From the sequence record NC_048053.1: 64,000 nt of DNA. One strand, 5' to 3'. The position numbers and the translations under genes were made by a program. A model generated the notes under the pieces. The model was not told the DNA's origin and did not search any database. It saw nothing but the letters and a program-made list of their open reading frames with translations. Positions 7,716-53,400 of the stretch are shown piece after piece (within the stretch, counting starts at the first letter, position 1; the number at the start of each line of letters is the position of its first letter).

Positions 7716-7719
7716 AGGT

Positions 7720-14436: not shown

Positions 14437-14440
14437 TGGC

Positions 14441-14477: not shown

Positions 14478-14927
14478 CGTATCAAATTTTTCATGCGGAT
14501 TTAAAAGTTTGACTCGCAGCCTATAGAATAACGGCGCGGCAATCGGTATATAGCTTGGGCAAATAAAAGCAGTTGTTCGCCGTGTTGCATCCGACAGAAT
14601 CGCCGCGCCATTTGGAGGCGGCACAAAACCCCACGTCTGAAATTTTGTTTGTCTGAATAAGCGGAGTTACCCGCAATTTACCGCAATCAAATTTAAATTT
14701 TTCGGCAAGTGTTGTCGCTGTCTAACACATCCCCATAATGTGCGCTTTGCCGTACACCACGGCGTAGCCAGACGCGAGACGTTTCGGTGTTCTCGCACAC
14801 ATTTCTATAATGCCTGATCTTACCCCTTGCCAAAGCAAGATCAGTAGCGACATAAGGAGGATGAGATCTTTCACTCTGAATGTTTCCTTATATCGAGTTC
14901 TTCAAATACATTTTACAGTATTAAATC
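14478..14927 (-). ncRNA. candidate structured ncRNA (about 450 nt)
   Basis: no credible ORF; stems 14531-14543/14599-14611, 14737-14803 (multibranch), 14814-14844 and 14848-14895; stem mismatches resolve as G-U pairs on the minus strand. Confidence 0.5.
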
Positions 14928-14954
14928 TTAACCACCGTAGAACCAATCATTCAT
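14928..14954 (-). CDS. possible 8-aa mini-ORF MNDWFYGG
   Basis: AGGAG RBS 8 nt upstream; ATG overlaps the preceding TGA. Confidence 0.3.
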   Translation of the reverse strand: MNDWFYGG

Positions 14955-15055
14955 TTTGCTTCTCCTGTTCCGCAATCAATTATCCACGCACGTAATTCTT
15001 CGCGAGACATTTTTGCAGGCGGTGTGAATGTTTCAGATTTAAGAGCTTTATCCAT
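14951..15055 (-). CDS. small phage protein (MDKALKSETFTPPAKMSREELRAWII...)
   Basis: 34-aa ORF below the track cutoff; resembles small phage proteins with an 'F.I.RM..AL.S......lSREE.R.fi' pattern (from memory). Confidence 0.55.
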   Translation of the reverse strand: MDKALKSETFTPPAKMSREELRAWIIDCGTGEAK

Positions 15056-15094
15056 CCGGTTAATATCAAAAATAACAACCGGATCTACAAGCGC

Positions 15095-15406
15095 TCATTT
15101 TTCAGATGCACGCATCATGCAGTCTTGCGCTTCAAGCAGTTTACGCAAACCAGCACTTTTTTCTGCGCTATCCGGAATCTCGTTATCTAGCGTTTCCGCA
15201 ATATGTCGAAAACATCCAGCAATTCCCATCTTCGTGAAATCGCCTGCGAAGCGTTCCTGATCAAAGTAGTTCATGATCGGATTAGAATATTCTTTCTTCG
15301 CGCCGCCCCAATCACCAACTTCTTTCGGGCCAGGCATTCCGGTCGGGCCAGCATTTGTTCCCGGAGAATTTTTCTTTTCGGTTATATCAATACGTCTTTC
15401 CGACAT
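15095..15406 (-). CDS. small helical-hairpin protein, possibly Acb2/Tad1-like nucleotide sponge
   Basis: GAGGA RBS; C-terminal LDNEIPDSAEKSAGLRKLLEAQDCMMRA motif of a widespread phage family. Confidence 0.6.
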   Translation of the reverse strand: MSERRIDITEKKNSPGTNAGPTGMPGPKEVGDWGGAKKEYSNPIMNYFDQERFAGDFTKMGIAGCFRHIAETLDNEIPDSAEKSAGLRKLLEAQDCMMRASEK

Positions 15407-15420
15407 TTTTTGTTCCTCTT

Positions 15421-16400
15421 AGGTAACATCCTGCATTACGCTGTTAAGGGCAACGCAATGCAAGTTGTCTTCCCAACTCTCCAGACAAAAAGATTTTCTA
15501 TTCGTTTCCCGTCTCCCCACTGAAACAGGTCTAAACGAAATCTATCTTCGAAGCCTCGCAGGAGGTCTTGCAATACGCGATGGACGGCGTAGGCAAAATA
15601 CGATCTTCGGTCTGCGGCAGTTATTTGAAATCATCGTAAGATGACAAGATAGTGTCGTAAAACCGCTACCCACACTTTAAACTTCCTGCTAAATAAGATT
15701 CGAATACGGAAGCACCGCACGGGATATTCGAAAATAAGTCCTCTTTGATTGGCAACAGCTTTTATGGTACAGCGCAATGCACACTCAAACTTCGAATGTG
15801 CATTAAGCAGTGCGAAGATTTTGTTTCCCGGTTCCCCATTGAAGCAGGTCTAAACAAAAATCTTGGTATGGCCTAGCCGGAAGCCTGAAACATCAGCAAG
15901 AATGCTCAGTAAAGAACTATCCACACCTGCGGAGGTTAAGACACTTAATCGCGAATGAAAAACTTAATGTGGAATGCTTTCGCGCACCGCTTGTCAACAA
16001 GCCACATGGATATGTCAAACGTTGCCATTACACGCTCAGACGTGTGCGAGATACCGCTCCACCGGATCTCAGTATATTCACTTTACAGTTTTAAAATAAA
16101 TATACGGAAAACGTTGGCAAAAGATTTCCCGTTTATGTCCTCGTTAGAAAACATAAACGGCATTCTTTCTTGCTGTCTGCGATAAATCGTTTTTTCTCTG
16201 TCTGGAAGAGAAAAGGCGATTTCGTTTCCCCCTGTTAGGAGCGGCTTGGTAGCCTACAAGTGAAACGGCTGCCAGTGTTATATCCCCACTTTACAGATTC
16301 GTTCTCCCGCAAAAGAACTTTTATGAATCCAACTGGCTAGGGTCTACAGACAAGGCGGGGAAAAAGTAAAACCGCCTTGCCTCAACTAATTACTATTTAC
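15421..16400 (-). ncRNA. candidate large structured ncRNA (about 950 nt)
   Basis: about 1 kb with no credible ORF in an otherwise gene-dense window; more than 12 hairpins, multibranch junctions and a duplicated 33-nt module. Confidence 0.55.
15504..15855. repeat. two 33-nt imperfect direct repeats (15504-15536 and 15823-15855)
   Basis: GTTTCCCGTCTCCCCACTGAAACAGGTCTAAAC vs GTTTCCCGGTTCCCCATTGAAGCAGGTCTAAAC, 29/33 identical. Confidence 0.9.
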
Positions 16401-16409
16401 AGATTTGCT

Positions 16410-18188
16410 TTAGAAAATTTTGCGCTTAACTTGTGAATAGTAAACTTCAAAAGGAGCGCCATATAAAGCAGGGCCACGTTGCGCACGCGCCGTAACTTTA
16501 CCTGTATGAAGATGCACTTCGGTGATTTCTACCGTAGGCTGTTTCGGGCGAATAGTTTCGTAGATAGGTGCATTCAACGTAGGATAATCCTCGTAGAATT
16601 TAGCGAAACTTTCTTGCTGTTCTTTGGTAGCAGGAGGCAGAGTTAAACGCAATTCAGCGGCTTTCTTACCACGCGCCAAACGAACAGCACCTTTTTTCAA
16701 AGGTACGCCTTGATACATCAGATAAGAAGTAATGCGGCGAGCAATACCCAATACCTGATCATAAACAACGTCATTCATTTCTGGCGCACTAAAACGAATT
16801 CCGGTTGTTGGTTGTGGATGAGCCAGACGAACGCCAGTGCTGAAATAACCTTCTTCAATCAGGCGGCGCAAGAAGTCATAGGTTTTTGCAACGGTGCCGT
16901 CATAGATCGGAAATTCAATTTTTGGCGCATCAGCTTTAGGTTCAACAAAAGTTGGAAGCTGAACAGGCGCAGCCATTTTAACAGTCTGCGAAACTTTATA
17001 AGTGTTCTCCAGAATAGGAGTTGTTTTGATTACAACTTTATTCTTAATTGCTTTCTTATAGTTTTCGTCAGTGGTGAGTGAAGTAAATAGGCGATAGTCA
17101 ACCGGACTCGTATAGCCGCCGATAATATCGCGCACCTGCGTTTGCAGTTTTGCCTGCGTGTCAGCAAAAATTACGCGACTACGGTTAGGCGTACTCGGAG
17201 AAACCGGGAAGAACGCGCCGTAAACAGTTTTGATGTTGCGCGGCGATCCTGTTCCCGTAACCTTAGTTGCATTTTCCAGTTTCGGAAGTTTTTCAGCCTG
17301 ACCGACAGGCGCAACTTTCGGCGTACTGCGAATCGCTTTACCTTTAATATAACTGGTGCCTTCCGGATCAACAGTCAGATTACTCAGCAGAGTTTTCACT
17401 GCTTGAGAATCCATCCAACTTTCAATAGGAACAGCGAGATTGTGCGCGAGATAATGTTTCTTACGGCGCAGCAGAACAACAGTGCCTTTCGGAATAAGAG
17501 GCGAGAGAAGTTTTTTCTTCGCAGTTCCGACATAAGCAAACGAGTCGTTCTTCAAATCTGAAATTTGACCAAACGGTGCGGTAAATTCCAGAGCGCCCAT
17601 GATGTTCTGCGCAGTTTCATGGCCGCGAACAATAAACTGAATTCGAGGACTATCTTTCAAACGAAGATCATAACGGTCTTTGTTGAGATAGGTAATCTTG
17701 ATCAGATCGCCTTTCTCAAGTTCCAGATCATATTCGTCCGAAGCATCATCTACCGCCATTTTCTTGCCAGTATATTTGAGATACTTAGGCGCGGCAGATT
17801 CAGAGCTAACATCCAGCACATCGAAAACACGTTGAGAGTTTTCAGCATACTCACGCGCAGCAAGCATAGCGGTAGCGAGATTGTAGCTAATGGATTTTTC
17901 TTTCGGTGGAACTAACTGAACATGAACACTGCTACTTGCGCTCATGAAAACAGTTTGATTATCGTCGCGAGTTCCGGCGAAGTGCATTCCAGTAAGACGC
18001 TCTACCGCGTCAGCACTAATGCTTTCGTGTGCGATACGATCACCGGGAACAATTTCAGTGATCTCCCCACGGTGCCAGACATATGCGGCGCGTCCGTTAT
18101 GACCAATAAAATGATCACCTACTTTAGAAATTGACCGTGGGATAATTCCCAAGTCAGAGATAACGCGAGAAGGTTTTTGAACAATCAT
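16410..18188 (-). CDS. putative internal head protein
   Basis: 592 aa; several N-terminal S-x-S motifs; two copies of the shared Y(K/R)YxG domain. Confidence 0.65.
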   Translation of the reverse strand: MIVQKPSRVISDLGIIPRSISKVGDHFIGHNGRAAYVWHRGEITEIVPGDRIAHESISADAVERLTGMHFAGTRDDNQTVFMSASSSVHVQLVPPKEKSISYNLATAMLAAREYAENSQRVFDVLDVSSESAAPKYLKYTGKKMAVDDASDEYDLELEKGDLIKITYLNKDRYDLRLKDSPRIQFIVRGHETAQNIMGALEFTAPFGQISDLKNDSFAYVGTAKKKLLSPLIPKGTVVLLRRKKHYLAHNLAVPIESWMDSQAVKTLLSNLTVDPEGTSYIKGKAIRSTPKVAPVGQAEKLPKLENATKVTGTGSPRNIKTVYGAFFPVSPSTPNRSRVIFADTQAKLQTQVRDIIGGYTSPVDYRLFTSLTTDENYKKAIKNKVVIKTTPILENTYKVSQTVKMAAPVQLPTFVEPKADAPKIEFPIYDGTVAKTYDFLRRLIEEGYFSTGVRLAHPQPTTGIRFSAPEMNDVVYDQVLGIARRITSYLMYQGVPLKKGAVRLARGKKAAELRLTLPPATKEQQESFAKFYEDYPTLNAPIYETIRPKQPTVEITEVHLHTGKVTARAQRGPALYGAPFEVYYSQVKRKIF

Positions 18189-18197: not shown

Positions 18198-18638
18198 TTA
18201 TATCGAAATTTTTCGCATTGAGTGTTGCTGGAGAAGTCGAAGATTTCCAAACATCACATTATATGCAGAGGTTCCATACGTGTGGATGAGTTCGCGAGGA
18301 ACAAACGTGCCGAAATAAAGACAGTTAGGATCGAGTTGAGTGATTTCCATTCCAACGTTTTTATCAATGTTGGAAACCACCCACACCCACGGTTCCGCAA
18401 AGAAACGATCATTGCGAACATGGATACGATAACCAATTGCCATTTCTCGACCGCTAGGATCAAACGAAAACAGATCAACAGTTTTCTTATTCATTGCTTT
18501 CTGTACGGTGAACAATGCCATCGTGCGAAACTTTTCAGAAAACTGCGGAAGGTGCGCGTTGTCCTGTTCTATTTGCAGCAAGATTTTGTCTTGCTGTTCC
18601 TGCGTCATCTTTCCAAAATATTTTATTGCGAAAGGCAT
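18198..18638 (-). CDS. hypothetical protein
   Basis: 146-aa ORF coupled to the upstream kinase gene. Confidence 0.75.
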   Translation of the reverse strand: MPFAIKYFGKMTQEQQDKILLQIEQDNAHLPQFSEKFRTMALFTVQKAMNKKTVDLFSFDPSGREMAIGYRIHVRNDRFFAEPWVWVVSNIDKNVGMEITQLDPNCLYFGTFVPRELIHTYGTSAYNVMFGNLRLLQQHSMRKISI

Positions 18639-19216
18639 TTCAGAATCTCCCCGACAATTTCGGTAGGAGTTGTATTATCGGTACTGAATACTGCATCATA
18701 GCCGCCCGGAAGATTCCGATAACGGTCTTGATACATTTCGAAAGTTTCGGCATCGACCATACGCGCTTCAATATTGTCGCTACCTTCGCGCTTATCGCCA
18801 CGACGAGAAACATAAGTGTCGTATGTGCAAGTAAGCAGGATGCTAACTACTTGAACATCCGGACGCAGAATATTAACAGTGCGATCAAACAGCACTTGCG
18901 TCTTATCGTCTTTGACTTGCAGCGCCCACGTTGAAGGCCAGCCACGATCAGAAATAACTACATCGGCAGAGGACTCCGCAAGATAATCCATCAAAGAAGA
19001 TCGTGCGGCGAGAAACAGAAGCATTTCAGTTGTCGGCGAGCGCACATTATTATCATGCAGCGCGATGTTGCGAAGCTGTTCCGCAAGTGGAGTTGTTCCC
19101 GGCTCTCGAACACGGATAACACTCATATCGCGCAAACGCAGAGACGATTCTAAAATTTCTGCGGTAGTGGATTTTCCCACACCTTCTGTTCCTTCAAGGA
19201 GGATGTATTTTTTCAT
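18623..19216 (-). CDS. tmk: thymidylate (dTMP) kinase
   Basis: P-loop EGTEGVGKST; VREPGTT; LLFLAAR; VISDR; start reassigned to MKKYILL. Confidence 0.93.
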   Translation of the reverse strand: MKKYILLEGTEGVGKSTTAEILESSLRLRDMSVIRVREPGTTPLAEQLRNIALHDNNVRSPTTEMLLFLAARSSLMDYLAESSADVVISDRGWPSTWALQVKDDKTQVLFDRTVNILRPDVQVVSILLTCTYDTYVSRRGDKREGSDNIEARMVDAETFEMYQDRYRNLPGGYDAVFSTDNTTPTEIVGEILKCLSQ

Positions 19217-19220
19217 TTGA

Positions 19221-19709
19221 TTACCTAAACTTGCCTCCACGCCATGCAGCATGGATTAGAAGACGGGAAAGGATTTTGTTTGATGTTTCGTGTGCTGTAG
19301 CATTCTTTTTAACTCGCGCATTACCTAAAGAAGTTACAACAATAACCCCCGCTCCGCTGCCTTTAATGCGAGCAAGAATTTTCTCTCCGTGAGATTCAAA
19401 CAAACGTTCAGAAATAACGAAATAAAACTTGTGGCAGTATTCAAAGTATTTGTGCCATTTCTTATCAGAAGAGAAATCAGCCCAACTACTTTTGACCTCA
19501 GAGATTACTACATGACATTTTGTGTTGAGTGACCAAACATCTGCACGTAGATTGCCGTATTTGTTCAAACCAAATTCAATGTGATTAGAATATCTCTTAT
19601 CGATCCAGTAACCCACAACTGCTTCCGTTAAAAAGGCAGTTGTCTCGCCACGCGACAAACTTGTGAAAACAACTGCGGGTTTCCGGATTTTAATTCTTCT
19701 ACGACGCAC
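19221..19709 (-). CDS. mmcB: MmcB-family PD-(D/E)XK nuclease-like protein
   Basis: RADVWSL...ISEVKSSWADFSSDKKWHKYFEYCHKFYF is the MmcB/DUF1052 signature. Confidence 0.85.
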   Translation of the reverse strand: MRRRRIKIRKPAVVFTSLSRGETTAFLTEAVVGYWIDKRYSNHIEFGLNKYGNLRADVWSLNTKCHVVISEVKSSWADFSSDKKWHKYFEYCHKFYFVISERLFESHGEKILARIKGSGAGVIVVTSLGNARVKKNATAHETSNKILSRLLIHAAWRGGKFR

Positions 19710-20151
19710 CTAATTCCAACTTCTTGATTGCCTGTTTCAGAACAGGTTTCCAATCGCGATCAATCTTTTTAAGCGCATCTTCGGCAGAGAACCAACGACG
19801 TTCGCGTTGATGTACTTCCAGATAGTTATCAAGTTCTTCATGCACCTGCATCAAAAACCATGTTACTTTCTGGAGGCGTCCGGTACTGCCTTTAACGTAT
19901 TCCATTTTAGCAATTTTCTTGCCGGGAACACCGCGCAGACCTGCCTCTTCCATTGCCTCTTTTATCGCGCTCGCTTCCAACGAAAGATCCGGTTCCTTAC
20001 CGCCTTTTGGTAATCCCCAATTGTTCGCGTGCTTTGTGCGAATCATGCAGATTTCCAAATCACCTTCATCGTTGTAGCGATACGGAATAACGCCGCTTTG
20101 TTTGCGAGGCTTGCGCCCGTCGCCTTCATCCAACGTGAGAATAACTTTCAT
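19699..20151 (-). CDS. Nudix hydrolase
   Basis: WGLPKGGKEPDLSLEASAIKEAMEEAG Nudix box; N-terminal SGVIPYR. Confidence 0.92.
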   Translation of the reverse strand: MKVILTLDEGDGRKPRKQSGVIPYRYNDEGDLEICMIRTKHANNWGLPKGGKEPDLSLEASAIKEAMEEAGLRGVPGKKIAKMEYVKGSTGRLQKVTWFLMQVHEELDNYLEVHQRERRWFSAEDALKKIDRDWKPVLKQAIKKLELGAS

Positions 20152-32028: not shown

Positions 32029-33714
32029 TTAGATTGCGCCGCGATTGATCAGATCGATAGCGTACTGAATATCACCGACAGGCGGCACAATTGCAGTAAC
32101 GTGAATACGTTTCGTGTAACGAGTAGGATCAAGGAAAATATCAATGATCAGATCGCCACGCGCTTCGTCCTGCGTAGAGTTGTTGGTATAGTCACATACA
32201 ACTTCATACCAATCCAAACCACGACCTAAGCGAATCGGTTCCAGAATACTTTCCATTCCGGTAATCTGCGCTTGTTTTAAAATGTCGTCGTTCGGTTCGA
32301 ATACCGCACGCAAGTTATTTGCGCGAGCGGAAGCATGAAGCATTGCGAGCAGACGGCGAACACCGATATCATTCAGTGCGCTGCGCGTAGTCATCGCAGT
32401 ATCTGCGCCCCACAGGAAAATACCTTCACCTTCGAAAACAGCAATCGGGTTGATTTGGTTTTCAACCAGCACATCACGATCATTCAATTTGAAACGGTGA
32501 CGAACATCAGTAGCGAAATCGATGTTACCGCGATTCAAACCGCCCGGTGCCAGCCAGCTTGCAATCTGATCCGTGTTCAACATGCAATACGCCATGCACA
32601 CAGAAGCCGGAACATAAAAATCGCGAGCGTTTGCAGTATCACGCGCTTTCACATCACTGTTACAGATCGCAGTCCAGCTATCAGTGATAGTAAATTCTGC
32701 GCCCTGATAAGTTTTAATGCCGCGACGATACGCAACAGCATTATCGCGTGCCTGCATGGTAACAGGGATACCGACTGTAGAGATACAGTCCATACGCGTT
32801 TGCGAAAGTTCATTGATCTTGTTTGCGATTACCGGATGTTCGATACCACCAGAACACAGAATACCGCAAGCGATCTGTTCCCAATCCTGATAGTTATCCC
32901 AACCTTCAACGATTGCGGCAAGCGAGTTGTTTGCAATCGTTTGATCGGAATGATCAACGTCGATGATATCGCCAGAAGTTGCACCAACAAACTGACCGTT
33001 AATTGCAGTCGGATTTGTCGGATCGTAAGGGCCACCACCGATAGCGTTGAACAGAACAAATTTCGGATCGTCCAACAGTTTGTAGTTATCTTCGTTCAAA
33101 CGGAAACGAATATAATTGGAGTTGTTGTTAATCACATCTTCAATGAAGAATTGATTTCCAGCATCATCACGCCAATAGAAGTTGGTCACAGTATGAGACT
33201 CAACTGGCGTGAGATTGTTGCCGATATAAACACGAATCAGCGCTTTAATGCCAAGCGGATCATTCGTGTCAGGCTGGAAAGAAATCCAGATATCATTTGC
33301 TTCGTCGTACTGAGACAGCGAATAAAACAGACCGATATCTTCGGAACGAAACGCAACCTGATCCGGATCTTCAAAACCTGCATCGCTCACAGGCCGCAGC
33401 GTAGCAAGGTTGTTGAACATCGTTGCAAACACGCCACCATATTTCGCATTGAGAGCAACGCGAGTTACATTCAAACGACGAGCTTTCGTCATAAGAATTT
33501 TAGCGATTAAAACGTTGATTGCATAACGACCCGTAGGTGAACCAAGTTTCGTTTCGATTTCATCTTTAGAAGTGATGGTAATATTTTTGCCGATTTCACC
33601 TTTCGGGAATGGCAGCACCAGCGTGCAATATCCGTTGGTAACAAGAGTAGACGAACCACTCCGGTCATTCTCCATCGTATACGTGCCAGCGCTCGGATGA
33701 TCAGGAAGTAGCAT
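32029..33714 (-). CDS. tail sheath protein 1
   Basis: SWLAPGGLNRG...ENQINPI...LWGADT...IGVRRLL...FEPND sheath C-terminal motifs. Confidence 0.95.
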   Translation of the reverse strand: MLLPDHPSAGTYTMENDRSGSSTLVTNGYCTLVLPFPKGEIGKNITITSKDEIETKLGSPTGRYAINVLIAKILMTKARRLNVTRVALNAKYGGVFATMFNNLATLRPVSDAGFEDPDQVAFRSEDIGLFYSLSQYDEANDIWISFQPDTNDPLGIKALIRVYIGNNLTPVESHTVTNFYWRDDAGNQFFIEDVINNNSNYIRFRLNEDNYKLLDDPKFVLFNAIGGGPYDPTNPTAINGQFVGATSGDIIDVDHSDQTIANNSLAAIVEGWDNYQDWEQIACGILCSGGIEHPVIANKINELSQTRMDCISTVGIPVTMQARDNAVAYRRGIKTYQGAEFTITDSWTAICNSDVKARDTANARDFYVPASVCMAYCMLNTDQIASWLAPGGLNRGNIDFATDVRHRFKLNDRDVLVENQINPIAVFEGEGIFLWGADTAMTTRSALNDIGVRRLLAMLHASARANNLRAVFEPNDDILKQAQITGMESILEPIRLGRGLDWYEVVCDYTNNSTQDEARGDLIIDIFLDPTRYTKRIHVTAIVPPVGDIQYAIDLINRGAI

Positions 33715-33751
33715 TATTATCTCCAAACAGCATGAAAACGTTGACGGTTTA

Positions 33752-39408: not shown

Positions 39409-40512
39409 TTAAAGCGTCCGGCTTTCAATATCTTCGTCCGGAATATAGCGGTTTACGAAATATTTTTCGACCACATCAATTCCGTTTAGAGCGTAAACTT
39501 TTCGCAGACTATCTCCCCAAACCATAAGTTCAGCAAGAGTAGCGAAATGTTCCATTGCCATCGTATTCTTTCCGGCGGCAACGTTCCTTATTGGATGAAT
39601 GTCTTTGCCTGCGATTGCCGCTTTGAATTTCATTCTATCCACATTTCGAAGCAGGGTTGAATCAATGAAATGCGCAAGTTCGTGAGTAATAACATGAGCT
39701 ACGCTTTTACTATTGAAACCGCCGAGCAACTTAACGATTTGTTTCGGGTCGAGGATGATTACTCCGTATTGCACACCGTTATAGCGAGTGTTCAAAATAA
39801 AGCAGCCATCATCACTTAAACCGAGTCCGATAAACAAACGTTTAAACGGCAACGGAACTTTTAATCCGATTGCAGGCATTACGTTATCCTGAATATCTTG
39901 CATTACATAATCAGGACAAGAGCGAGCGGATATACTGGAGCGTAAACCTGTTTTCAAATAATCCTCGTAGCTTTGAACTTCGAGTTTTACTTTGCCGCAT
40001 TTTTCCAGTTTCTTCACTTCGTAGTTATTAATGCTGCCGCCACCATAAACAGTATTAGCGTATTTCAGAGGCTTTAACTGTTTGTAGTTGACGTGTTCTT
40101 TTTCCTGAATTTCTTGCGCACGTCGCGTATTAGCGATTTCTTCCGTTTCATTAGAAACGGGCGCAGGTGCAGGAACAGCACTTTTATTTACTTGAGAAGG
40201 ATAAGCTGTAGGTGCCGGAATTGGCGCAGCAATTTCAGGCTTCGGAGTCTCCGAAACGTTCGCTTCTGGTATATCGAAATTAAAATTTTCAGGAAAAAGT
40301 TTCGCAGGATTTGCAGTAAATTCGCGAGAATCTTCACGCACCTTATTTCCCAATTCAATTGCAACTGGAATAACTTGTGATTGTTTTGGACTAGCGATAT
40401 AAGCAACGCCATCCCCAAATGCAACGCCAACAACATCACGCGTAGTTATTTCCAGTCCATTAGATCTCAGCGGCTCGCCGCCTAAATAACGATAAAAAGT
40501 AAAATCTTTCAT
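39409..40512 (-). CDS. zinc metallopeptidase-like protein
   Basis: ITHELAHFID (HExxH) plus downstream EHFA; N-terminal shared FYRYLG domain. Confidence 0.75.
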   Translation of the reverse strand: MKDFTFYRYLGGEPLRSNGLEITTRDVVGVAFGDGVAYIASPKQSQVIPVAIELGNKVREDSREFTANPAKLFPENFNFDIPEANVSETPKPEIAAPIPAPTAYPSQVNKSAVPAPAPVSNETEEIANTRRAQEIQEKEHVNYKQLKPLKYANTVYGGGSINNYEVKKLEKCGKVKLEVQSYEDYLKTGLRSSISARSCPDYVMQDIQDNVMPAIGLKVPLPFKRLFIGLGLSDDGCFILNTRYNGVQYGVIILDPKQIVKLLGGFNSKSVAHVITHELAHFIDSTLLRNVDRMKFKAAIAGKDIHPIRNVAAGKNTMAMEHFATLAELMVWGDSLRKVYALNGIDVVEKYFVNRYIPDEDIESRTL

Positions 40513-43769: not shown

Positions 43770-44687
43770 TTAGATTTGAATGTTACCAGAATCCGTCCAG
43801 CGAATGCCGTAACGCTCTACTACCGTGAATTCGATTTCAGTAAACTTACTGAGATCAAGTTGACGGAAAGTTTTCGTAGGATCGGCGGGAAGCGGAGTTT
43901 GTTTTGTTTCGGTATACAGATTGAGTTTAATCACAACATCGCCAGCAAGATGTTGCGGCTTGAAAGTTTGCGCAGTGTCTTCCAACAAACCACTTGCCAG
44001 AATATCATCAAAGAAAGTGTTGACGGTCATCGACAAGCCGCTATTCAAAATAGTCGGAGCGAATGCTAAAACTTGATCATAGAACGAACGATTCCACGAT
44101 GTATTACCAATTAGCGTTCGTTGTTTCTTTATGCGCGTAACTTTGCCGTCTTTGACTTCTCGATACTGATCGTAATACCACGCAGCATAAACCATATAAA
44201 CGTGCGGCAAATTCATCGTATCGAAATCAAACGCAGGAGCTACAACCATACGATGTTGAGTGCGAGCAATATTGCGACGGAAAACGTTAAGCGAGTAGTC
44301 GTATCCGCGACGGCAATTGATTGTCAGATTACTAACAACCGATTGTTGATAGCCGTTAGTAACAGCATACGCAAAACAATCTTGCCCAACAAAACCAGCA
44401 AGCGGCGTATAGATAAAACTCTCACCATCTAACGAAAGTTTTACTGAGCCGTGTATAGGTTGACTGATAAGAATTAAAGTTAATCGCCATCCACGCTGAA
44501 CAGGAACTTTATCAAGAACCCCCTCGCTAGGGGATTCCGATGTTTTAAAATCGCGTGCGCCCTGAATCATAATAGAGCGCAGCGGAATTTCAAAGTCTAC
44601 GTTGTTCGGCGTTTCAAGCGTGAGAGCAGGTGCTACAGGAACATCGTTGCGCCAGTAGTCCACAACACACGGTTTTGAAATCATCAC
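43770..44687 (-). CDS. virion protein with Ig-like (Big_9 / cadherin-like) domain
   Basis: QPIHGSVKLSLDGESFIYTPLAGFVGQDCFAYAVTNG. Confidence 0.8.
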   Translation of the reverse strand: MMISKPCVVDYWRNDVPVAPALTLETPNNVDFEIPLRSIMIQGARDFKTSESPSEGVLDKVPVQRGWRLTLILISQPIHGSVKLSLDGESFIYTPLAGFVGQDCFAYAVTNGYQQSVVSNLTINCRRGYDYSLNVFRRNIARTQHRMVVAPAFDFDTMNLPHVYMVYAAWYYDQYREVKDGKVTRIKKQRTLIGNTSWNRSFYDQVLAFAPTILNSGLSMTVNTFFDDILASGLLEDTAQTFKPQHLAGDVVIKLNLYTETKQTPLPADPTKTFRQLDLSKFTEIEFTVVERYGIRWTDSGNIQI

Positions 44688-46654
44688 GTCACCTTGTATT
44701 TCTTTTTAAACTGATCGATAGTATAAATCGGAATGCCTTTATCCATCGCCTTTTGAACTTTGCTGCTACCGCTTCCGGGATCTTTCGCAATCAAAACAGT
44801 AGTGTCTGCTTTCATGCTATCCGATGCAGTGCCGCCCAATTCGACAATACGCGCTTTCAAATCAGCATCACGCACGCCAGTAAACGCAACGTTAACACCG
44901 TTCAACTTATTGCTTTTCACAACAACTTTCTTCGGAGCTTTTAACTTGATGCCAATTTCCTGCGCCAAGTCGTAAGCATTAATACACGCATTGGAAATCT
45001 TAGGTGCAAGAGATTTGATGCCGTGAATGCCGCTAATAAGTTCCGTAAGATCAGAACGGCGTTTAAGCAGTTTCTGAATATCAGGAATCTCATCGACAAC
45101 TTTATCAAAGGAAGTATTTGCGCCGCGCATGAAATAGGGAGCACAAGCCTTGAGCCACACATTCAATTCAATTCCAGAAAGAATTGTTTTGTTGTGTTTC
45201 GCAATTTGCTTGCCGCGAGCATCACCCAAAATCCCACGCAATGTAGGCAGGCCGCAAAGAATAAGCGACTTAGGATCTTTGATTCCGCTTTCCATCAACA
45301 GATTTGCAGTCTTATCCCCGGCGTTAGAATATTCAGCAGTCGCCATAAAACTTTCAAGAAGTTTTGCATCAGCGGTGGCAGATTTTTTCTTAACGCGGAA
45401 TTCAACGCCTTCCATTGTATAAGGCACGTCCGGAAGTTTCGCTTTCTTCGCAGGGCGCACAATTTCCTGAATGTAGGGAATAACTTTATTACTGCGCACA
45501 AGTTTTACTTTTGCACCGATACCCAACGGACGTTTTTCATGAGGCGGTTTCTGCCCTTTCTTCGTTGGTTTCAGATAGCCATGTTCGATGTAATATCCGT
45601 TATGACCATTAGCGCGATTGATTGTGATCCCGCCGGGAACAACTACAGGTTCCACAATAACAACTGGTGCAAGCACGCCGTATTTTGTTTCCTGATAAAC
45701 TACATCCTTCACGGTTGTAATAACGCTATCCGCACTTGTATTCATTTTGAATTTGAATTCATGTTTCGGATTGCTTGAGGTTGAAGCAGGTGAAGGAATA
45801 TCATCAGATACAACAAGGCCATCCAACTCGTATTTGGATTTGCGCATACGGTCTTCGATCATCGTTACCAATTGTTCTTCGGTAAGATCGTCGAATGGCC
45901 CAAAGTGGCGAACCACAGTGAACCCATATTGTTTTAGAAGTTTAAATTGATCGCTTTTCTTTTTCTTTGAAGCAGCGCCGCCGATAATGCCGAAACAAAC
46001 GAGATCGATATGTTTGATTTCAGGTGGCGACTCAAAACGACGCATCAAACCAACAGACGCAGGACGAGCAGAAGTATATTCATAATCGCCCGGAGCGTCT
46101 TTGTGGAGCGTAGCCATAAATTTCTTCTGACTGATTAACGCTTCGCAACGAACAATGAAACGTTCTTTCGTTGAAATCTTTTTCGGAATATTAAACGAGG
46201 CCAAATGGCGCGTAACGTCTTTGCCCTTCGTACTGTCACCGCGAGTATAAGCAGCAACAGGAATTCCTTTTTCGTAAATCAGTTCAATGCTCTGACCATC
46301 CAACTTATCGCTAACGATTTTACTGTTACCGTTACTCAGGTGTTTCGCGAGAGCCGGAGAAGAAAGTTTTAGTTGGTTCAGACTCGCCATAGGAACAGGA
46401 AGCGGAACATCACTATCATCATGCGAGCCGATCTTTTTAGCCAGCGTAGATTTAGGCCAGCGTTCAGAAATATAATCGCGAATCGTGTCGTAAATGGTAT
46501 CATCAACAAGCGGCTGTCCTTCATCATATGCGTCATCGAAAGCATTGATAAGTTTTTTGGCCTGCGTCAGATTAAGAGTTTCCATTACTTTGATAGGATT
46601 CTTTTCTAATCGTTTTAGGCTTATGCTGGCTGAAATACTTTTGAATTCAGTCAT
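44684..46654 (-). CDS. ligA: NAD-dependent DNA ligase
   Basis: domain Ia (AYDEG...DD..YD), motif I KLDG, TRGD, ELDGLV, KFK, OB-fold and C-terminal BRCT (VAFTG...SSKVQKA). Confidence 0.96.
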   Translation of the reverse strand: MTEFKSISASISLKRLEKNPIKVMETLNLTQAKKLINAFDDAYDEGQPLVDDTIYDTIRDYISERWPKSTLAKKIGSHDDSDVPLPVPMASLNQLKLSSPALAKHLSNGNSKIVSDKLDGQSIELIYEKGIPVAAYTRGDSTKGKDVTRHLASFNIPKKISTKERFIVRCEALISQKKFMATLHKDAPGDYEYTSARPASVGLMRRFESPPEIKHIDLVCFGIIGGAASKKKKSDQFKLLKQYGFTVVRHFGPFDDLTEEQLVTMIEDRMRKSKYELDGLVVSDDIPSPASTSSNPKHEFKFKMNTSADSVITTVKDVVYQETKYGVLAPVVIVEPVVVPGGITINRANGHNGYYIEHGYLKPTKKGQKPPHEKRPLGIGAKVKLVRSNKVIPYIQEIVRPAKKAKLPDVPYTMEGVEFRVKKKSATADAKLLESFMATAEYSNAGDKTANLLMESGIKDPKSLILCGLPTLRGILGDARGKQIAKHNKTILSGIELNVWLKACAPYFMRGANTSFDKVVDEIPDIQKLLKRRSDLTELISGIHGIKSLAPKISNACINAYDLAQEIGIKLKAPKKVVVKSNKLNGVNVAFTGVRDADLKARIVELGGTASDSMKADTTVLIAKDPGSGSSKVQKAMDKGIPIYTIDQFKKKYKVT

Positions 46655-46677
46655 GAAAATTCCCTCTGCAAATATCC

Positions 46678-47601
46678 TTAAACATTTACAGTTTCGGCGA
46701 TGCGATTCGCAATAAAATCAGGAACCGTATTCATCGTTAAGCCATTACGTTTCGCCAACATAATAAACGCTTCTGCGTATTTAAGTTGTTGACTACCAAC
46801 ACCGCTAAATTGACGAGCATTGAGCAAGCGTCGAGACAGCTCGGAAACGATTGTTTGGCGAGTACGGAAACCGGAATTGATGTTTCGCAGCATTTGAAAA
46901 TACTTATGAACATCAGACTTGATTGAGAAAGTTTTAATGCCACTAAAATCTTTTCTGATAGCAGCATGAAGCAACACAAGGAAAGGATACAAATCTTCTT
47001 TCTGTCTGGCTTCGTTTTGTTTCTCAATGTCCTTAATGAAATCAGGACGGTTATCAGGTTCAGGAATTTGTTTGCCAGTGAGAGTCGAAGTCACATCGTT
47101 AAACAGTCCGATGCGTTTAATAGGCTTACGCGACAGCATATCTTTTTTGCTGCCATAGAAGTAGACTGGAATATTTCTTTTGCGTGCCTGCAAAGCAATA
47201 CCACGCAGATACATTCCATTACTTTTAATTCGCGCCTCTTCTTTTGTTCCAGCATTACAGTGAATTTCTTTAACGATACTGATATCAATATCCGGCTTAT
47301 CGATAATAATGCGTTCTTCGGACTCAGAATATTCAGCGCCGTTCTGCCAGAAATCAACAGGAACAACTTTATAGCGCGACCGGATTTTGTCAGCGTCAAG
47401 CACAAACAAAACTTCCGATCCGCCATTAGTTCGAATTGCGAAAATATTACTCAGTGTGCGGGTAGTGGAAAGGAAGAAGAGTCTGTTTTGAGAAAACTCT
47501 TCTTCCGCCTCGCTTCCGGAGGCAATACTCAAATGAAATTTTCCACTTCCCACAATACTCAGCGCATTTTTCGGCGAAGTAAAGTGGAAGAGTGTATTCA
47601 T
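46678..47601 (-). CDS. ADP-ribosyltransferase-fold protein (paralog 2)
   Basis: LFHFT...FFLSTTR...VLFVLD...SESEER. Confidence 0.55.
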   Translation of the reverse strand: MNTLFHFTSPKNALSIVGSGKFHLSIASGSEAEEEFSQNRLFFLSTTRTLSNIFAIRTNGGSEVLFVLDADKIRSRYKVVPVDFWQNGAEYSESEERIIIDKPDIDISIVKEIHCNAGTKEEARIKSNGMYLRGIALQARKRNIPVYFYGSKKDMLSRKPIKRIGLFNDVTSTLTGKQIPEPDNRPDFIKDIEKQNEARQKEDLYPFLVLLHAAIRKDFSGIKTFSIKSDVHKYFQMLRNINSGFRTRQTIVSELSRRLLNARQFSGVGSQQLKYAEAFIMLAKRNGLTMNTVPDFIANRIAETVNV

Positions 47602-48440
47602 AGATCTTTTATCGCCTCATAAATAAAACGAGGAATACCCGCGATTGTAATGCCTTGCTGTTTAGCAAGAATCGCAAGTGCTCGCGGAGTTTTCACGCGC
47701 GAATCATCGCTAGGATAATTGCGAGAGTTTCCGATATCATTACGCAGACCCGTTGCCAGTTCATTGTAACGATATTGATCGCCGTAGCTTCCACGAATTT
47801 TATCGTAGATATATGCAACTTCACTATCACCTTGCTTTAAAAGTTTAGGGATAGTTTTATTGATCGCTGCGTGCATCAATTGAAGCCACGGCATAACGTA
47901 GTCTCTACGGCTACGCGGAATATAACCACCACGAATGATTTTAGATTTAGCCAGAATGCGAGGATCATTAAGAGGTACGCGACGCTCTTTACGCATTGAG
48001 ATCATATCTTTTTGATTGTCGTAGGCAAACACGCTTACCTTTCGGCGTGAGCAAGCCAAAACGAGATCGCGAAGATATTTTCCATCATCGTTACGATCCA
48101 AGTTAATGTGAACAGCAATAATAAACGGCGTCGCCGGGATAGTCGGCTTATCAGTAATCAAACGTTCCTCAGCTTCGGAATATTTGTGATTCGCCCAATA
48201 GTCCATCGGTTCAAGTTTGTAACGAGACTCAAGAGCACGTCCGTCAAGTTCAAACATTACGCCGTGTGCTTTATCCGCAAACGCATTGCTTCGAGTACGC
48301 GTAAGAGACAGATAAAACAACTTACCTTTATTGATTGCTTCGTCAGATTCGGCAGCATCTGCCATACTCAGAAAGAATCGGTTATCAGAAACAATCTGCG
48401 CCGCTTTGTGAGTTTGAGTAAAGTGATATAAAGGTTTCAT
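47598..48440 (-). CDS. ADP-ribosyltransferase-fold protein (paralog 1)
   Basis: LYHFT...FYLSLTR...VMFELD...SEAEER. Confidence 0.55.
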   Translation of the reverse strand: MKPLYHFTQTHKAAQIVSDNRFFLSMADAAESDEAINKGKLFYLSLTRTRSNAFADKAHGVMFELDGRALESRYKLEPMDYWANHKYSEAEERLITDKPTIPATPFIIAVHINLDRNDDGKYLRDLVLACSRRKVSVFAYDNQKDMISMRKERRVPLNDPRILAKSKIIRGGYIPRSRRDYVMPWLQLMHAAINKTIPKLLKQGDSEVAYIYDKIRGSYGDQYRYNELATGLRNDIGNSRNYPSDDSRVKTPRALAILAKQQGITIAGIPRFIYEAIKDL

Positions 48441-50365
48441 CAGCTTACAATAGGTTCCTTGTTGACTTCAAACTCTTCTGACATATCGTACACGCGAGCG
48501 AATAGAGTTGGTTTCATATCCTTCACATGTTCTGCAATATCGAAAAGACTTTGTTTGCGAGCTTTATTGATTCGCACCTGACGAACTTCGTCCGGGCTGT
48601 TAGTGATATCGTAAAGCGTGTATACGATAATACTGTCAGAAGATTTATGCGGAGCTTCGCGGAGAATTACCCATTCACGTTTGAGTTTTTCATCGGCTTT
48701 GAACACCACAATATCGCCTGCTTCCGGATTCGCCAATTTCTCTGGCGTGCCTTTATTTTCTGTAGCTTGTTTTTTAGCAAGTTCAGCGGCCTCCTGTTCA
48801 GCGTTGAGAACATCCTCATCGACTTCATCGGAATCAGTTTCATCAATATCAGCAGCGTCGTCTTCGGAATCCGCTTCTTCCTCATCCTCTGAATCATCTT
48901 CTGAATCATCCTCTGAATCATCTTCTGAATCATCTTCTGAATCAGGATCTTCATCTTCTGCATCAGGATCTTCATCTTCTGCATCAGGATCTTCATCTTC
49001 TGCATCAGGATCTTCATCCTCAGAATCAGTTTCATCTTCTGAATCATCCTCTGAATCAGTTTCGTCTTCGGAATCAGTTTCGTCTTCCTCAGAATCTGAA
49101 TCATCCTCTGACTCTTCTGGAGCAGGTTTCGCGCCTTTAGCTTTTTTCTTAACTTTAGACGGTGGCGCTTCTTCCTCTTCGTCTTCCGGTTCTTCCTCAA
49201 CATCGGACAAATCGAAATCACTATCGACAGAATCAGAATCATCGCCTTCGCCGAACATGGAACCTATAACCGAATCAATTCCCATATTGTCGCTGGCGAA
49301 CGGACGCGCAGAAAGAATATCTTCAAGCGGAGCAAACATATCGTCTTCCTCTGCCAATTCTTCTTCCGCTACTTCCGCTTCAAGTTCTGCATCTAAATCC
49401 TCTTCTTCCTCTAATGCTTCTTCGGCAAGAATGGATTTGATTTGATTGCGCAGACGAACAGTAGGTACAGCGTTCTCTTCCGTGTCGAACGTGAGCGGTT
49501 TTGCAGTAGGAGCTTCCATTTCACCACGTTTGATTTTTTCTTTCATTTCATCAAAACGTTCTTGCTCTGCGCGAGCATTTTCTTTTTGCGCTCGTTTCGC
49601 GTCACGCGCAGAAACTTCCTTAGCAAGTTTTTCAGCACGCTGTTCAAGACGCGCAGCTTCACGCATTTCAACCTGCGAGCGATGTTTCAATTTTTTACTA
49701 TTGGCACGATATGCCTTAACGTCAGCATCGGACAGGGAACCGTTGGGCCAGTCCTGAATCGGCATAACGAGAGTTTCCGCAACAACTTTATCGTAGTTTT
49801 CCGGAGAGAGTTTTAAATACATCCCTTTCTCGTTAATAATAACGCCACCTTTCGCATCGCGAATATAACGCATACCGATCATTTCGTTCTTTTTCAGAAT
49901 CTCTTTGCCTTTAGTGTGAGTAACAGTCAAAGACAACTCTGGAACGATACGCCACTGATAGTTGCTAAAATCAATGCCGTTTTTATATTCATTAGGAACA
50001 GTGCGCGGAGCAAATCGAGCATTGTCGAAATTCTTACGCTGCAATTGACGTTCCGTAGTTTTAACGCCGCGAGCTTTCGAACGGCCTTCGCGCTGAACGA
50101 TATCAGGCAATTTGCGCAGTTTGGTTGCACGTTCAAGCAACTGATTACCGTTCTTTTTATCGAGCGGAAAATTGATATGAGGCATATCAGGAAAAATAAG
50201 AGTGAAACGAGATCCGCTTTTCAGAGACTTAACGCCAAAAATATCGCCTTCGCGAATCATGCGTTTATGGGTACGTTCCGAAACTTCTTTGCCTCGTTGC
50301 CCTGTATATTTGAACCAGTTGTATTCGCTAACCGCTTCGTCATATGTAGCCGACTGAGAGAGCAT
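48440..50365 (-). CDS. acidic putative internal head protein
   Basis: N-terminal LSQS-A; shared WFKYTG domain; D/E low-complexity tract. Confidence 0.7.
   Translation of the reverse strand: MLSQSATYDEAVSEYNWFKYTGQRGKEVSERTHKRMIREGDIFGVKSLKSGSRFTLIFPDMPHINFPLDKKNGNQLLERATKLRKLPDIVQREGRSKARGVKTTERQLQRKNFDNARFAPRTVPNEYKNGIDFSNYQWRIVPELSLTVTHTKGKEILKKNEMIGMRYIRDAKGGVIINEKGMYLKLSPENYDKVVAETLVMPIQDWPNGSLSDADVKAYRANSKKLKHRSQVEMREAARLEQRAEKLAKEVSARDAKRAQKENARAEQERFDEMKEKIKRGEMEAPTAKPLTFDTEENAVPTVRLRNQIKSILAEEALEEEEDLDAELEAEVAEEELAEEDDMFAPLEDILSARPFASDNMGIDSVIGSMFGEGDDSDSVDSDFDLSDVEEEPEDEEEEAPPSKVKKKAKGAKPAPEESEDDSDSEEDETDSEDETDSEDDSEDETDSEDEDPDAEDEDPDAEDEDPDAEDEDPDSEDDSEDDSEDDSEDDSEDEEEADSEDDAADIDETDSDEVDEDVLNAEQEAAELAKKQATENKGTPEKLANPEAGDIVVFKADEKLKREWVILREAPHKSSDSIIVYTLYDITNSPDEVRQVRINKARKQSLFDIAEHVKDMKPTLFARVYDMSEEFEVNKEPIVS
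48941..49020. repeat. 21-nt tandem repeat, about 4 copies (DEDPDAE), flanked by 12-nt SEDD and 18-nt SEDETD repeats
   Basis: atcaggatcttcatcttctgc repeated. Confidence 0.9.
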
Positions 50366-50394
50366 TTTTATTCTCCGTTTTTGGTGATATAAAT

Positions 50395-50401
50395 AAATTA
50401 G
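50395..50401 (-). promoter_or_regulatory. candidate late promoter core CTAATTT
   Basis: 30 nt upstream of ATG 50365. Confidence 0.45.
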
Positions 50402-50424
50402 GAACTTCCCTGTTCCTAGTTCTA

Positions 50425-53400
50425 TTAACCACCTGCGAGATAGCCGCGAGTGTCACAACCGAATTCACCACAATATTCCCCGCAAGGAATTTTGATAGCC
50501 CACGTCCATGTTCCATCAGGTTGTTGAATGCCAAATACTTCATCAGGAGTTTTGTGCCAAACATTTACAGCGTTTTGTAGCGCATCAAGTTCAGTCGCAA
50601 AATAACCTTTCTTGAGAGGATCTTGTTCGCCGTATTCTGTTTTCGGAACAAACATTGTTACTTTCATGCGCTCAACAGGATAAGCAGCATTTTCAATTAC
50701 GCGTGGTGCGTATTCTCCCGCAACAATAACTTGAACTGAAACAAGTTCGGCATCTGACGCTTTCGGTTTATAAACATCCGGCGCGACTTTAAACCAATGA
50801 TCCGTCTCATGACCATAAGCAGAACTGTCAATTTTCCTTTCAACAGCGGTGTCGAGTTTATAAATACTACCCGGCACTTTGTTCTCGATGTTCGTTCCAA
50901 TTTCATACGAGAGCGCACTCTTCGCTTGTCTTGGATCGGCGAGATACTTATATGTCAGTGGTGCGAAAACAAAATGAGAATCCGGAGACATTTCGTAAGA
51001 CGGATTCAACTCAAACCATTGAGGCAACGGCGGTTTATATTCTGCGGTAGGTTGCAGATAAACAATAGGACGAGGATTAACAGCGTCAATGCGATGAATC
51101 TCATCAACAGTGTTTCTCCAGTCCATACCGTGCGACGTTGATGGATCGGCAGGCAAGTACCAATCAGATTCTGCGGCATCAACTTTGTTATAGTTGTAGC
51201 CCATTGTTTCCGATGCTTCAAACGCGTTGTAGTTCGGAACTAATGTTGCCTGAATCCATTTAATCTGAGTTTCATTTTTCGCAGGCGTAGAAAGTTGAAT
51301 GGAATACGGTTCAGCCGGGAAAATCCCTTTGTTCGTTCCTTCAACGTAATAGACAGGAGCAGCAGGAATATGATGAACAGGTTCATACGGCTCAACTACA
51401 TCAGGCGTAGTGTCAATACGATCAGAAACTGCATTCCACTCTCGCGCAATATCAGCAACATCAAATGCGTCGCCAGAATTCACCTCATTCCATTTAGAAA
51501 CGCGGGGCGCGATTACATCATCTATGATTAAAACTTTCTCATCCAGTTGGAAGAACGAGTTACTAAATTCTCCTGAGACTGAATCCTTATACACCGAATC
51601 GCCAAAGGTGAATCCATCTTTCGTTCCGTAGCTAGAATCGGACGCGTACTCATATGCAGGCATATCCATTAACTGCGCTGCAAACGAATGCCACTCTTCA
51701 CGAACTAAATTCATTTGAGTTGAACTATACAGCAACGCAGAAGCATATTGCGCGTTAAACGTTGCCTCCTGTCCTGCATAGTCGATTACAAAATCAAACT
51801 CAAATATAGAAGGAATCCGATCATTTCCGGATACTGCTTGCGTAGAATAATTCTGCCCACGCGATTCAAAAGCATATTGCAATTCTGCCAAATCAACTGC
51901 ATCCGGAACAGAATCGAATTTAGCCGAATAAGTCACAGTACCTGAAAAATCATGAAGCCACGAAATTTCCGCGTTCCCTAGTTTCAAAATTTTTGGCTGC
52001 ATATGTGCCGGATACGATTCAAGTTTCAGAACCGAATCACACGAAACATCAGTCAATACGAAACTATTTTTATACATGGCGCGAGAATCAATCGGCGCTT
52101 CAACATCAGTGCCGTCAATCTCAAACAAAATGCCAGCAGGAACAACAATGTCCGTAATAAAGTTTGGTGGAATTTCATCGAACTTTAACTGATCACTTGC
52201 TGCAACAACCATCCCATTAGAATAAGTTGGAGCAGGCTGCGCATCCAGCCAAGTTTCGTGCGTCCATATATCCCACGTATATTTATAACGAGAGCTACCA
52301 AATTTGATTTGGTATTTCTTGTTCGGTTCCGGAGGCGTAAACAGAAGTTGCGTTGACTGCCCAATCTCCAGCGTTACTTCTTTACCGCCCTGAATAAATT
52401 CACCGTCAACAGAATCAATTGTGAGCGCAAGCGCCGTGATTCCATCGTTAGTTAATACAACAGTGCGATATTCTTTTCCGGCCTGAGCGTATGCACGATT
52501 AGGAACTGGATCGAATTGAATTTCCGAAACAGTATAAATTCCCCAATCAGTTTCATACTCTCCCGCAATCACTTTAATCAGAGTGATATTGTATCCATGC
52601 TTAACGCGTAGATAAAACTTATCGCCGTTATACATGAACACAGGAGCCGGAGTTTTCACGCCGTTAACGAACACCTCAACACGATCATTCTGTTCCTCAC
52701 CGTCGATCAGCACAGAGAATTCAACGCGCTGGTTTACACCAGTAATTTGTTTCTCTACTGTTTGCTGCCAACTGTAATCCGGAACATCGTAGATTGTTTC
52801 AAAGGTAAACGGATCAGGAAGCGGATCAGGAATCACTTCAACTAAACCATTCGAGCGCCCCACACTGAAAGGGAAAGGCTGCGCCGTCAAATAAGCGTGC
52901 TCTGCAACTACGGTAACTTGCTCGCCATTACGAACTGTTTTTACCTGAGTATTGTTTACTGTAGCAGTCCACACAATACCTGTAGGCAAAACAATCGGAA
53001 GCGAATCATCAGGATCATCGAACGTTGCAGTAAAACTAAACGTAACTTTTTTGCCGAGTGGAACATTATATGTCGGCAGTGTTGCGCCGAAGGTAGGCAA
53101 ATAAGTGTGCGTAAGAGTTAATGTCGGACGAGCAACAAAACCATAAAGCGGAGTTGTTTCTCCGTTACTCATCAAGTTTAAATAAGACCAGTTGCGCGAA
53201 CTTACATCCGTGATCGGCAAGGTTCTTTCAACAAAACTTTTACGCCCGGTTGTGTCACTACCTGCCTCAAGAAGAACAGAAGAAGCGGGATTCGTGAAAG
53301 TTGTTGGATAGCGAAGATGATTCCCGTCTTGCGTACCTGCGTTAAATTTAACGCCAGTTTTTATCACGTAACGAGAAAGAGAGTTATCCGCAAAATTTAT

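Follow-up and report, generated by a model that had tools for sequence, protein, structure and literature searches.

What do two adjacent genes of a jumbo myovirus encode, when RefSeq labels both only as hypothetical proteins? The question is raised by gp140 and gp141 of Dickeya phage vB_DsoM_JA29 (253 kb, genus Salmondvirus), which lie within the 64,000 nucleotides of sequence record NC_048053.1 analyzed here and called the window (window positions 44000-51000 correspond to 106000-113000 of the record, with 100% identity). The original prediction, made from the sequence alone, had read them as tandem, full-length paralogs with an ADP-ribosyltransferase (ART) fold, next to an NAD-dependent ligase gene, and as putative NAD-consuming enzymes of host takeover or anti-defence with diverged targets. 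Predicted structures and conserved residues indicate that the two proteins are probably active mono-ARTs dependent on nicotinamide adenine dinucleotide (NAD), from a phage family that has no name in the libraries searched. The two genes and their domains are listed below, with the supporting evidence in brackets.

47598-48440, minus strand: gp141 (280 residues), upstream paralog, predicted ART-fold N-terminal domain and basic helical C-terminal domain (open reading frame, paralogy, orthologs)
46678-47601, minus strand: gp140 (307 residues), downstream paralog, predicted ART-fold N-terminal domain and basic helical C-terminal domain (open reading frame, orthologs)
47961-48440, minus strand: predicted N-terminal ART-fold domain of gp141, residues 1-160 (AlphaFold2 model, Foldseek, conservation)
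47107-47601, minus strand: predicted N-terminal ART-fold domain of gp140, residues 1-165 (AlphaFold2 model, Foldseek, conservation)
47601-47948, minus strand: predicted C-terminal helical domain of gp141, approximately residues 165-280, isoelectric point (pI) of about 10 (match to a hidden Markov model (HMM) of the C-terminal domain, charge)
46681-47049, minus strand: predicted C-terminal helical domain of gp140, residues 185-307, pI 9.9 (six helices in the AlphaFold2 model)

Both open reading frames are intact, without stops or frameshifts, and occupy the interval (46678-48440) in which the tandem pair had been placed. The two proteins share 31% identity and 51% positives across their entire length (BLASTP, E = 2e-44), a similarity far above chance; they are full-length paralogs. 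Their N-terminal domains alone are approximately 40% identical, and tblastn against the complete JA29 genome found only these two copies of the family. Both proteins are basic (pI 9.6), their C-terminal domains being near pI 10. Word-indexed searches, which returned close relatives only, on jumbo-phage-sized contigs, yielded orthologs with 59-93% identity to gp140 and 58-96% to gp141. In comparisons with the JA11 and JA13 orthologs, at a synonymous divergence of 0.5-0.7, the ratio of nonsynonymous to synonymous substitution rates (dN/dS) was 0.06 for gp140, 0.03 for gp141 and 0.026 for the neighboring ligase gene. Both gp140 and gp141 are under strong purifying selection.

Predicted fold and active site

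The full-length gp140 was modelled with AlphaFold2 from alignment A1 (23 sequences), with a predicted local distance difference test score (pLDDT) of 80.8 and a predicted template modelling score (pTM) of 0.67. For gp141, the N-terminal domain was modelled in the same way from alignment A4 (108 sequences; pLDDT 87.4, pTM 0.85). The gp140 model consists of a beta-rich N-terminal domain (residues 1-160) and a six-helix C-terminal domain (residues 187-304) that ends in a helix-turn-helix-like pair. In a Foldseek search of the PDB, DarT entries occupied ranks 1 to 6 for gp140, the best being Thermus DarT with NAD (7omw; E = 3e-3, probability 1.0, template modelling (TM) score 0.47 by target), and the ART effector SopF with NAD ranked seventh. 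The gp141 domain matched yeast Tpt1 first (7yw4; E = 5.5e-4, TM-score 0.63 by target) and then seven DarT entries (7omv at E = 1.3e-3 and the others up to 3e-2; TM-scores of 0.47-0.53 by query), with archaeal Tpt1/KptA, SopF, Scabin, CteC, AvrPphF and an Rhs ART toxin further down. The top-ranked PDB matches of both models are all ART-superfamily enzymes (probability 0.8-1.0), and the nearest named structural neighbors all modify DNA or RNA. Both models also fit the ART core, a split beta-sheet in which helices follow the strands. The ART-like fold on which the original prediction hinged was thus recovered with two independent models. The E-values are marginal, but two paralogs, two alignments and two models all point to the ART superfamily and, within it, to the members that act on nucleic acids.

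Among predicted viral structures, gp140 matched the JA11 ortholog of gp141 (TM-scores 0.81/0.89), and its closer matches were all uncharacterised. Among the remote matches were proteins from Bacillus phage G, baculoviruses, an iridovirus, a tupanvirus and Bodo saltans virus; PMC9503650 reports ARTs in these virus groups, Bacillus phage G and Bodo saltans virus included. One match, the uncultured-phage family relative A0A6J5LK92 (BFVD), is labelled as containing an ASCH domain, and JA29 encodes a separate ASCH-domain protein (record 33321-33722, Pfam E = 2e-5).

Conservation was assessed in 189 domain instances, given here in gp140 numbering. His6 is present in 188 of the 189 domains (99%), and nearly the same holds for Thr8 (97%), Ser45 (100%), Arg48 (97%), Glu93 (99%), Glu95 (99%), Arg97 (98%) and an aromatic residue at position 84 (99%), followed by Tyr149 (92%), Trp85 (87%) and His114 (87%). 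Both gp140 and gp141 retain every one of these residues, with His6, Thr8, Ser45, Arg48, Glu89, Glu91 and Arg93 as the gp141 equivalents of the first seven. All motifs quoted in the original prediction were found in both translations, and they coincide with the most conserved columns of the family. The strand-2 motif is Ser-Thr-Thr in gp140 and Ser-Leu-Thr in gp141, and both carry Glu-x-Glu on strand 5. The combination of Glu-x-Glu at strand 5 and Ser-Thr-Thr on strand 2 is a hallmark of arginine-specific protein ARTs.

Strand 1 of both models contains His6 and Thr8, strand 2 contains Ser45 and is directly followed by Arg48, and strand 5, preceded by a low-confidence loop, has Glu93 and Glu95 at its start. 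The anticipated His, Ser-Thr-Thr and Glu-x-Glu motifs (97-100% conserved) thus fall on predicted strands 1, 2 and 5, a layout that is canonical for ARTs (section 3.3.1 of PMC9503650; PMC5512222), and Ser45, Arg48, Glu93 and Glu95 would be the catalytic positions. The residues fit the ART triad of His or Arg on strand 1, Ser or Tyr on strand 2 and Glu, Asp or Gln on strand 5. Two profile searches of 177,635 PDB sequences gave two matches each below an E-value of 10, and E. coli DarT1 was present in both (E = 0.39 and 0.58, over 43-47 residues), with the family His-Phe-Thr aligned on DarT1 His17-Phe18-Thr19. These DarT1 residues bind the ribose hydroxyls of NAD and stack on the nicotinamide (PMC11543638), and the equivalent Tpt1 motif, His-Gly-Thr, holds the 2'-OH of NAD (PMC6333775). 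The family resembles DarT, Tpt1 and PARP-like ARTs in its His-type strand 1 and combines this with the Ser-Thr-x and Glu-x-Glu motifs typical of Arg-Ser-Glu toxins.

Three points weigh against an ART assignment: every Foldseek E-value is marginal (5.5e-4 at best), sequence methods reach significance against no ART family, and the catalytic positions are assigned from predicted secondary structure and spacing. A small alpha/beta domain could resemble ARTs by chance and have a function unrelated to NAD, as the best E-values of only 5.5e-4 to 3e-3, the TM-scores of 0.4-0.6 and the lack of sequence-based significance would allow. We regard such a misassignment as rather improbable: models from different paralogs and alignments both rank only ART enzymes at the top, the sequence profile twice singled out DarT1, at the NAD-contacting motif, and the conserved polar residues lie on the expected strands.

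Taking gp140 and gp141 as ARTs, we infer NAD binding, transferase activity, residue roles, target and biological role as follows. The N-terminal core of approximately 160 residues would bind NAD, with His6 and Thr8 of strand 1 holding the adenosine ribose hydroxyls and Ser45 and Arg48, where strand 2 ends, contacting the pyrophosphate. Glu93-x-Glu95 at the start of strand 5, together with Arg97, would drive the splitting of NAD between nicotinamide and ribose and the transfer to the acceptor. Acceptor recognition in ARTs takes place where the poorly ordered loop that joins strands 4 and 5, with its aromatic pair at 84-85, would lie. The basic helical C-terminal domain is the probable target-binding part. 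Since the loops and the C-terminal domain are the most divergent parts of the paralogs, the two probably have different targets. The C-terminal domain received no family assignment; its only Pfam match, to Trans_coact (phage late-transcription coactivator helix), was not significant (E = 0.027-0.11), and a JGI label of HTH domain antitoxin on one relative was not reproducible.

Family, gene neighborhoods and candidate acceptors

Neither gp140 and gp141 nor the profiles had a significant match in Pfam, PHROGs, PADLOC, NCBIfam or PDB sequences, and no PHROG match was found among 25 diverse members. Sub-threshold Pfam matches on strand 1 were to Tox-ART-HYD1 (6 of 92 members) and PARP. When alignment A1 was searched as an HMM against 1.84 billion cluster representatives, 1,977 matches were obtained at E ≤ 1e-3 and 1,261 at E ≤ 1e-10. 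In most cases only profile positions 3 to approximately 165 are matched, and the N-terminal domain therefore defines the large family, which comprises about 2,000 clusters at 50% identity and appears to be essentially confined to large phages. A name-reporting profile search added 141 members, nearly all unnamed or called hypothetical protein; the rare other names either stem from fusion partners or were not reproducible. The surveys of the Aravind group (PMC9503650) may already count these proteins among "phage ARTs".

The domain also occurs in multiple copies in single polypeptides (six in P0036 and two each in six others) and is found fused to ART-PolyVal, amidoligase, LysM plus SLT, GH19, GNAT, NUDIX or DUF5661 domains, a pattern known from the ARTs of injected "polyvalent" phage effector proteins (PMC5512222). 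Family genes form arrays of two in JA29 and Salmonella phage Sen-NF, three in Pseudomonas phage Lu11 and five in Alishewanella phage Slickus01, and are single-copy in at least nine other sampled loci. The Slickus01 array (1794-7792 of locus L009) packs its five paralogs within 6 kb beside a Dam methylase gene and is the largest gene array seen. Adjacent genes of similar size in L016-L018 were ruled out as extra paralogs, since they are not family members. In a neighbor-joining tree without support values, paralogs cluster by phage, which suggests repeated lineage-specific expansion of the family, and the JA29 duplication appears older than the split from its relative of 60% identity.

The surroundings of the pair in JA29 include the following features.

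44684-46654, minus strand: gp139, NAD-dependent DNA ligase, immediate downstream neighbor (Pfam, PHROGs)
48440-50365, minus strand: gp142 (641 residues), immediate upstream neighbor, KMPT-N domain plus a long acidic Asp/Glu/Ser-rich region (Pfam KMPT-N, 4.6e-17; PHROG 35607)
50399-50418, minus strand: terminator-like hairpin upstream of gp142, possible 5' boundary of a gp142-gp141-gp140-ligase unit (pattern scan only)

The adjoining gene does encode an NAD-dependent ligase, as had been proposed (Pfam DNA_ligase_aden at 7.5e-22, with OB and BRCT domains; PHROG 3869 at 4e-130). Genes gp142 and gp141 overlap by 1 nucleotide and gp141 and gp140 by 4 nucleotides, and 23 nucleotides separate gp140 from the ligase gene; with the hairpin 5' of gp142, this arrangement is consistent with one transcription unit, and on pattern evidence gp140 and gp141 appear co-transcribed with the ligase gene. 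A sigma-70 promoter scan showed no enrichment (22 sites vs 20.8 expected). The tandem pair and the same flanking genes are kept in L002, a 257-kb metagenomic phage contig (60-70% protein identity), and the pair-plus-ligase arrangement in Sen-NF (approximately 35% identity). After the ligase gene come gp138 (43770-44687, minus strand), with a bacterial Ig-like Big_9 domain, and a family-2 glycosyltransferase gene.

KMPT-N (PF20294) is found in two proteins of the window, gp142 and gp133 (39409-40512, minus strand). In gp133, KMPT-N occurs as two stretches, together with a weak match of SpvD-like (papain-fold) type (E = 5e-4), and the protein is encoded beside the head maturation protease; gp142 and gp133 may be head-packaged or ejected. 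Elsewhere in JA29, between the genes for terminase and portal, gp004 (record 5100-5315) is a 71-residue "DNA ligase" fragment that has no Pfam support and is possibly a solo ligase domain Ia such as PMC9503650 describes. A minus-strand island at 18623-20151, with thymidylate kinase, an MmcB-like repair protein and a Nudix hydrolase (Pfam NUDIX, 2e-12) amid structural genes, parallels the ART-ART-ligase island. The baseplate/tail module contains a gene-poor stretch of approximately 2 kb (14403-16410) with one annotated open reading frame of 103 residues, in which no tRNA and no Rfam match were found.

Approximately 13 neighborhoods of family members were sampled. An NAD-dependent DNA ligase is the neighbor in the JA29 clade (JA29, L002), Sen-NF and Rhizobium phage RHEph12, and topoisomerase I in Lu11, HRDY3 and RHEph12, with a type IB enzyme in L019. 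The link to a ligase, mentioned in the original prediction, thus recurs in some relatives and is not universal, topoisomerase I being an equally frequent neighbor. The RNA ligase RnlB adjoins the family gene in Vibrio phage 6E35.1a, and other neighbors encode Dam methylase, DNA polymerase B, deoxycytidine monophosphate deaminase, UvdE and an SNF2 helicase. One locus has NAMPT and a NadM-like Nudix gene within 7 kb. Family members also have genes of the 7-deazaguanine/queuosine pathway no more than a few kb away (QueD-like, GTP cyclohydrolase I and radical-SAM in L016; queC in Vibrio phage 6E35.1a), a proximity that may be coincidental in large phages.

These contexts bear on what the enzymes would do with NAD. 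The ART-like fold might be real and yet serve to hydrolyse or merely bind NAD or ADP-ribose, as an NADase, sensor or decoy that performs no macromolecular transfer. Some ART-fold proteins are NADases (PMC9503650), one relative is fused to NUDIX, and NAD-salvage genes occur near the family at one locus. We consider this very improbable: NAD depletion would be an unlikely strategy for a phage dependent on an NAD-dependent ligase from the same gene string, the complete conserved triad, the Arg residues and the basic domain suggest a macromolecular acceptor, and near-invariant acidic residues are hard to reconcile with pure binding.

Another proposal that draws on the ligases is Tpt1/KptA-like end processing, in which NAD-driven removal or capping of terminal or 2'-phosphates on RNA or DNA would prepare or protect ends for the ligase. 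Yeast Tpt1 is the single best PDB match of gp141, with many archaeal Tpt1/KptA entries next, and the H-x-T motif is common to Tpt1 (PMC6333775). Tpt1 enzymes are able to ADP-ribosylate 5'-phosphate ends (PMC6182162, PMC12678800), and a ligase gene is adjacent in JA29, L002 and Sen-NF (NAD-dependent) and in Vibrio phage 6E35.1a (RnlB). Such a role is nevertheless unlikely, as the RNA lobe with three of the four essential Arg-His-Arg-Arg residues is absent, Pfam Tpt1 gives no match, the invariant Glu-x-Glu is foreign to Tpt1, and most members are not beside a ligase.

A protein acceptor has more in its favor. The paralogs could be protein-directed mono-ARTs like T4 Alt, ModA and ModB, which would modify host RNA polymerase, translation factors or defence proteins, each paralog with a different protein set. 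The invariant Glu-x-Glu with Ser-Thr-Thr is the arginine-specific signature mentioned above, host proteins are the presumed targets of multiple phage ART paralogs and polyvalent-protein ARTs (PMC5512222), GNAT and lytic domains occur as fusion partners both here and in ART-PolyVal, and the protein-directed ARTs SopF, CteC and AvrPphF appear lower among the structural matches. On the other side, strand 1 carries His rather than the Arg of Alt/Mod, there is no Pfam or structural match to Alt/Mod-type ARTs, the best structural neighbors modify DNA or RNA, and the neighboring genes are mostly involved in DNA transactions. A protein acceptor is thus possible in view of the Glu-x-Glu signature, the precedents among phages and the polyvalent-protein contexts.

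For the mono-ARTs that gp140 and gp141 probably are, we lean towards a nucleic-acid acceptor, either a base in DNA or RNA or a terminal phosphate; such an acceptor is plausible, if short of probable, and somewhat likelier than a protein. We do so because of the DNA- and RNA-modifying structural neighbors, the Arg after strand 2, the basic charge and the DNA-transaction neighborhoods. Several observations weigh against this overall reading. In addition to the E-x-E motif typical of arginine-specific protein ARTs, the neighborhoods are heterogeneous and only about 13 were sampled, and no ADP-ribose-removing partner is adjacent, with neither macro nor NADAR seen in the sampled contexts. JA29 gp011 (record 9964-10548) is annotated as a putative O-acetyl-ADP-ribose deacetylase, which Pfam and PDB sequences do not confirm. 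The family also lacks the long loop with which DarT binds single-stranded DNA and which carries a base-coordinating His or Asn, approximately 11-12 residues separating predicted strands 4 and 5, and the N-terminal RNA lobe of Tpt1, its ART core starting at residue 3.

The ADP-ribosylation of DNA or RNA is known so far chiefly as an anti-phage weapon of bacteria (DarT, CmdT) or from RNA repair (Tpt1). If the target is nucleic acid, phages would be using the same chemistry in the opposite direction. We tentatively propose that gp140, gp141 and their relatives are phage nucleic-acid ADP-ribosyltransferases, an offensive or housekeeping mirror of DarT defence, that would mark bases or phosphate ends during infection in concert with the NAD-dependent ligase and, in relatives, topoisomerase I; they could represent a widespread, unrecognised modification system that diversifies via paralog arrays. 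The recurrent lineage-specific arrays (two, three and five genes; up to six domains per protein) suggest that target specificity is rapidly diversifying. With this family, the NAD/ADP-ribose conflict network would gain a sizeable block of dark phage proteins, and the alignments made here would permit annotation of the family across phage genomes.

Comparison with known systems

Four known groups resemble the family, which belongs to none of DarT, Tpt1/KptA, Alt/Mod or ART-PolyVal because it fails a defining feature of each. The comparison with T4 Alt, ModA and ModB made in the original prediction does not go beyond analogy, since strand 1 has His, not Arg, and no Alt/Mod-type match was found, by sequence or structure, in any search. 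The Alt/Mod clade carries Arg on strand 1 (PMC5512222). What the two have in common are several diverged ART paralogs in a large myovirus, two of them adjacent, and the Ser-Thr-x and Glu-x-Glu motifs. ART-PolyVal (PF18760) is similar in its phage origin, its multiple copies in giant proteins and its fusions to GNAT, peptidoglycan hydrolases and amidoligase. Its active site is His-Tyr-Asp, whereas the family has His-Ser-Glu(x)Glu, so that the acidic residue differs, and PF18760 does not match the domain. P0031 and P0042 contain both domains as separate units, with the ART-PolyVal match falling outside the copies of the family's own.

Tpt1/KptA is closer, with 7yw4 as the best gp141 match, an ART-like NAD lobe, the His-x-Thr motif and some family members adjoining ligases. 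In Tpt1/KptA, an N-terminal winged-helix RNA lobe carries the Arg-His-Arg of the essential Arg-His-Arg-Arg tetrad (PMC6333775). Membership was rejected, as the family has neither this lobe nor the tetrad, shows no Pfam match and instead contains the invariant Glu-x-Glu.

The likeness to DarT, also drawn in the original prediction, holds at the level of the fold. Pfam DarT has no match at E ≤ 1 among 92 members, which together with the missing long DNA loop and antitoxin partner speaks against membership. The family core is shorter (approximately 160 residues vs 200-220 in DarT), has Glu-x-Glu-acidic-Arg instead of a single Glu and is followed by an extra basic helical C-terminal domain; the family occurs in lytic phages, and no macro (DarG) or NADAR antitoxin gene adjoins it in JA29 or in the sampled contexts. 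In DarT, Arg51/52 provides a phosphate contact and a proton relay needed for base modification. Arg48 of the family (97% conserved) likewise follows directly after predicted strand 2, a comparison made by predicted position only. DarT is the closest or second-closest solved fold for both paralogs, and the family has in common with it a small single-domain catalytic core, an acidic strand-5 residue and, with E. coli DarT1, the strand-1 His-Phe-Thr.

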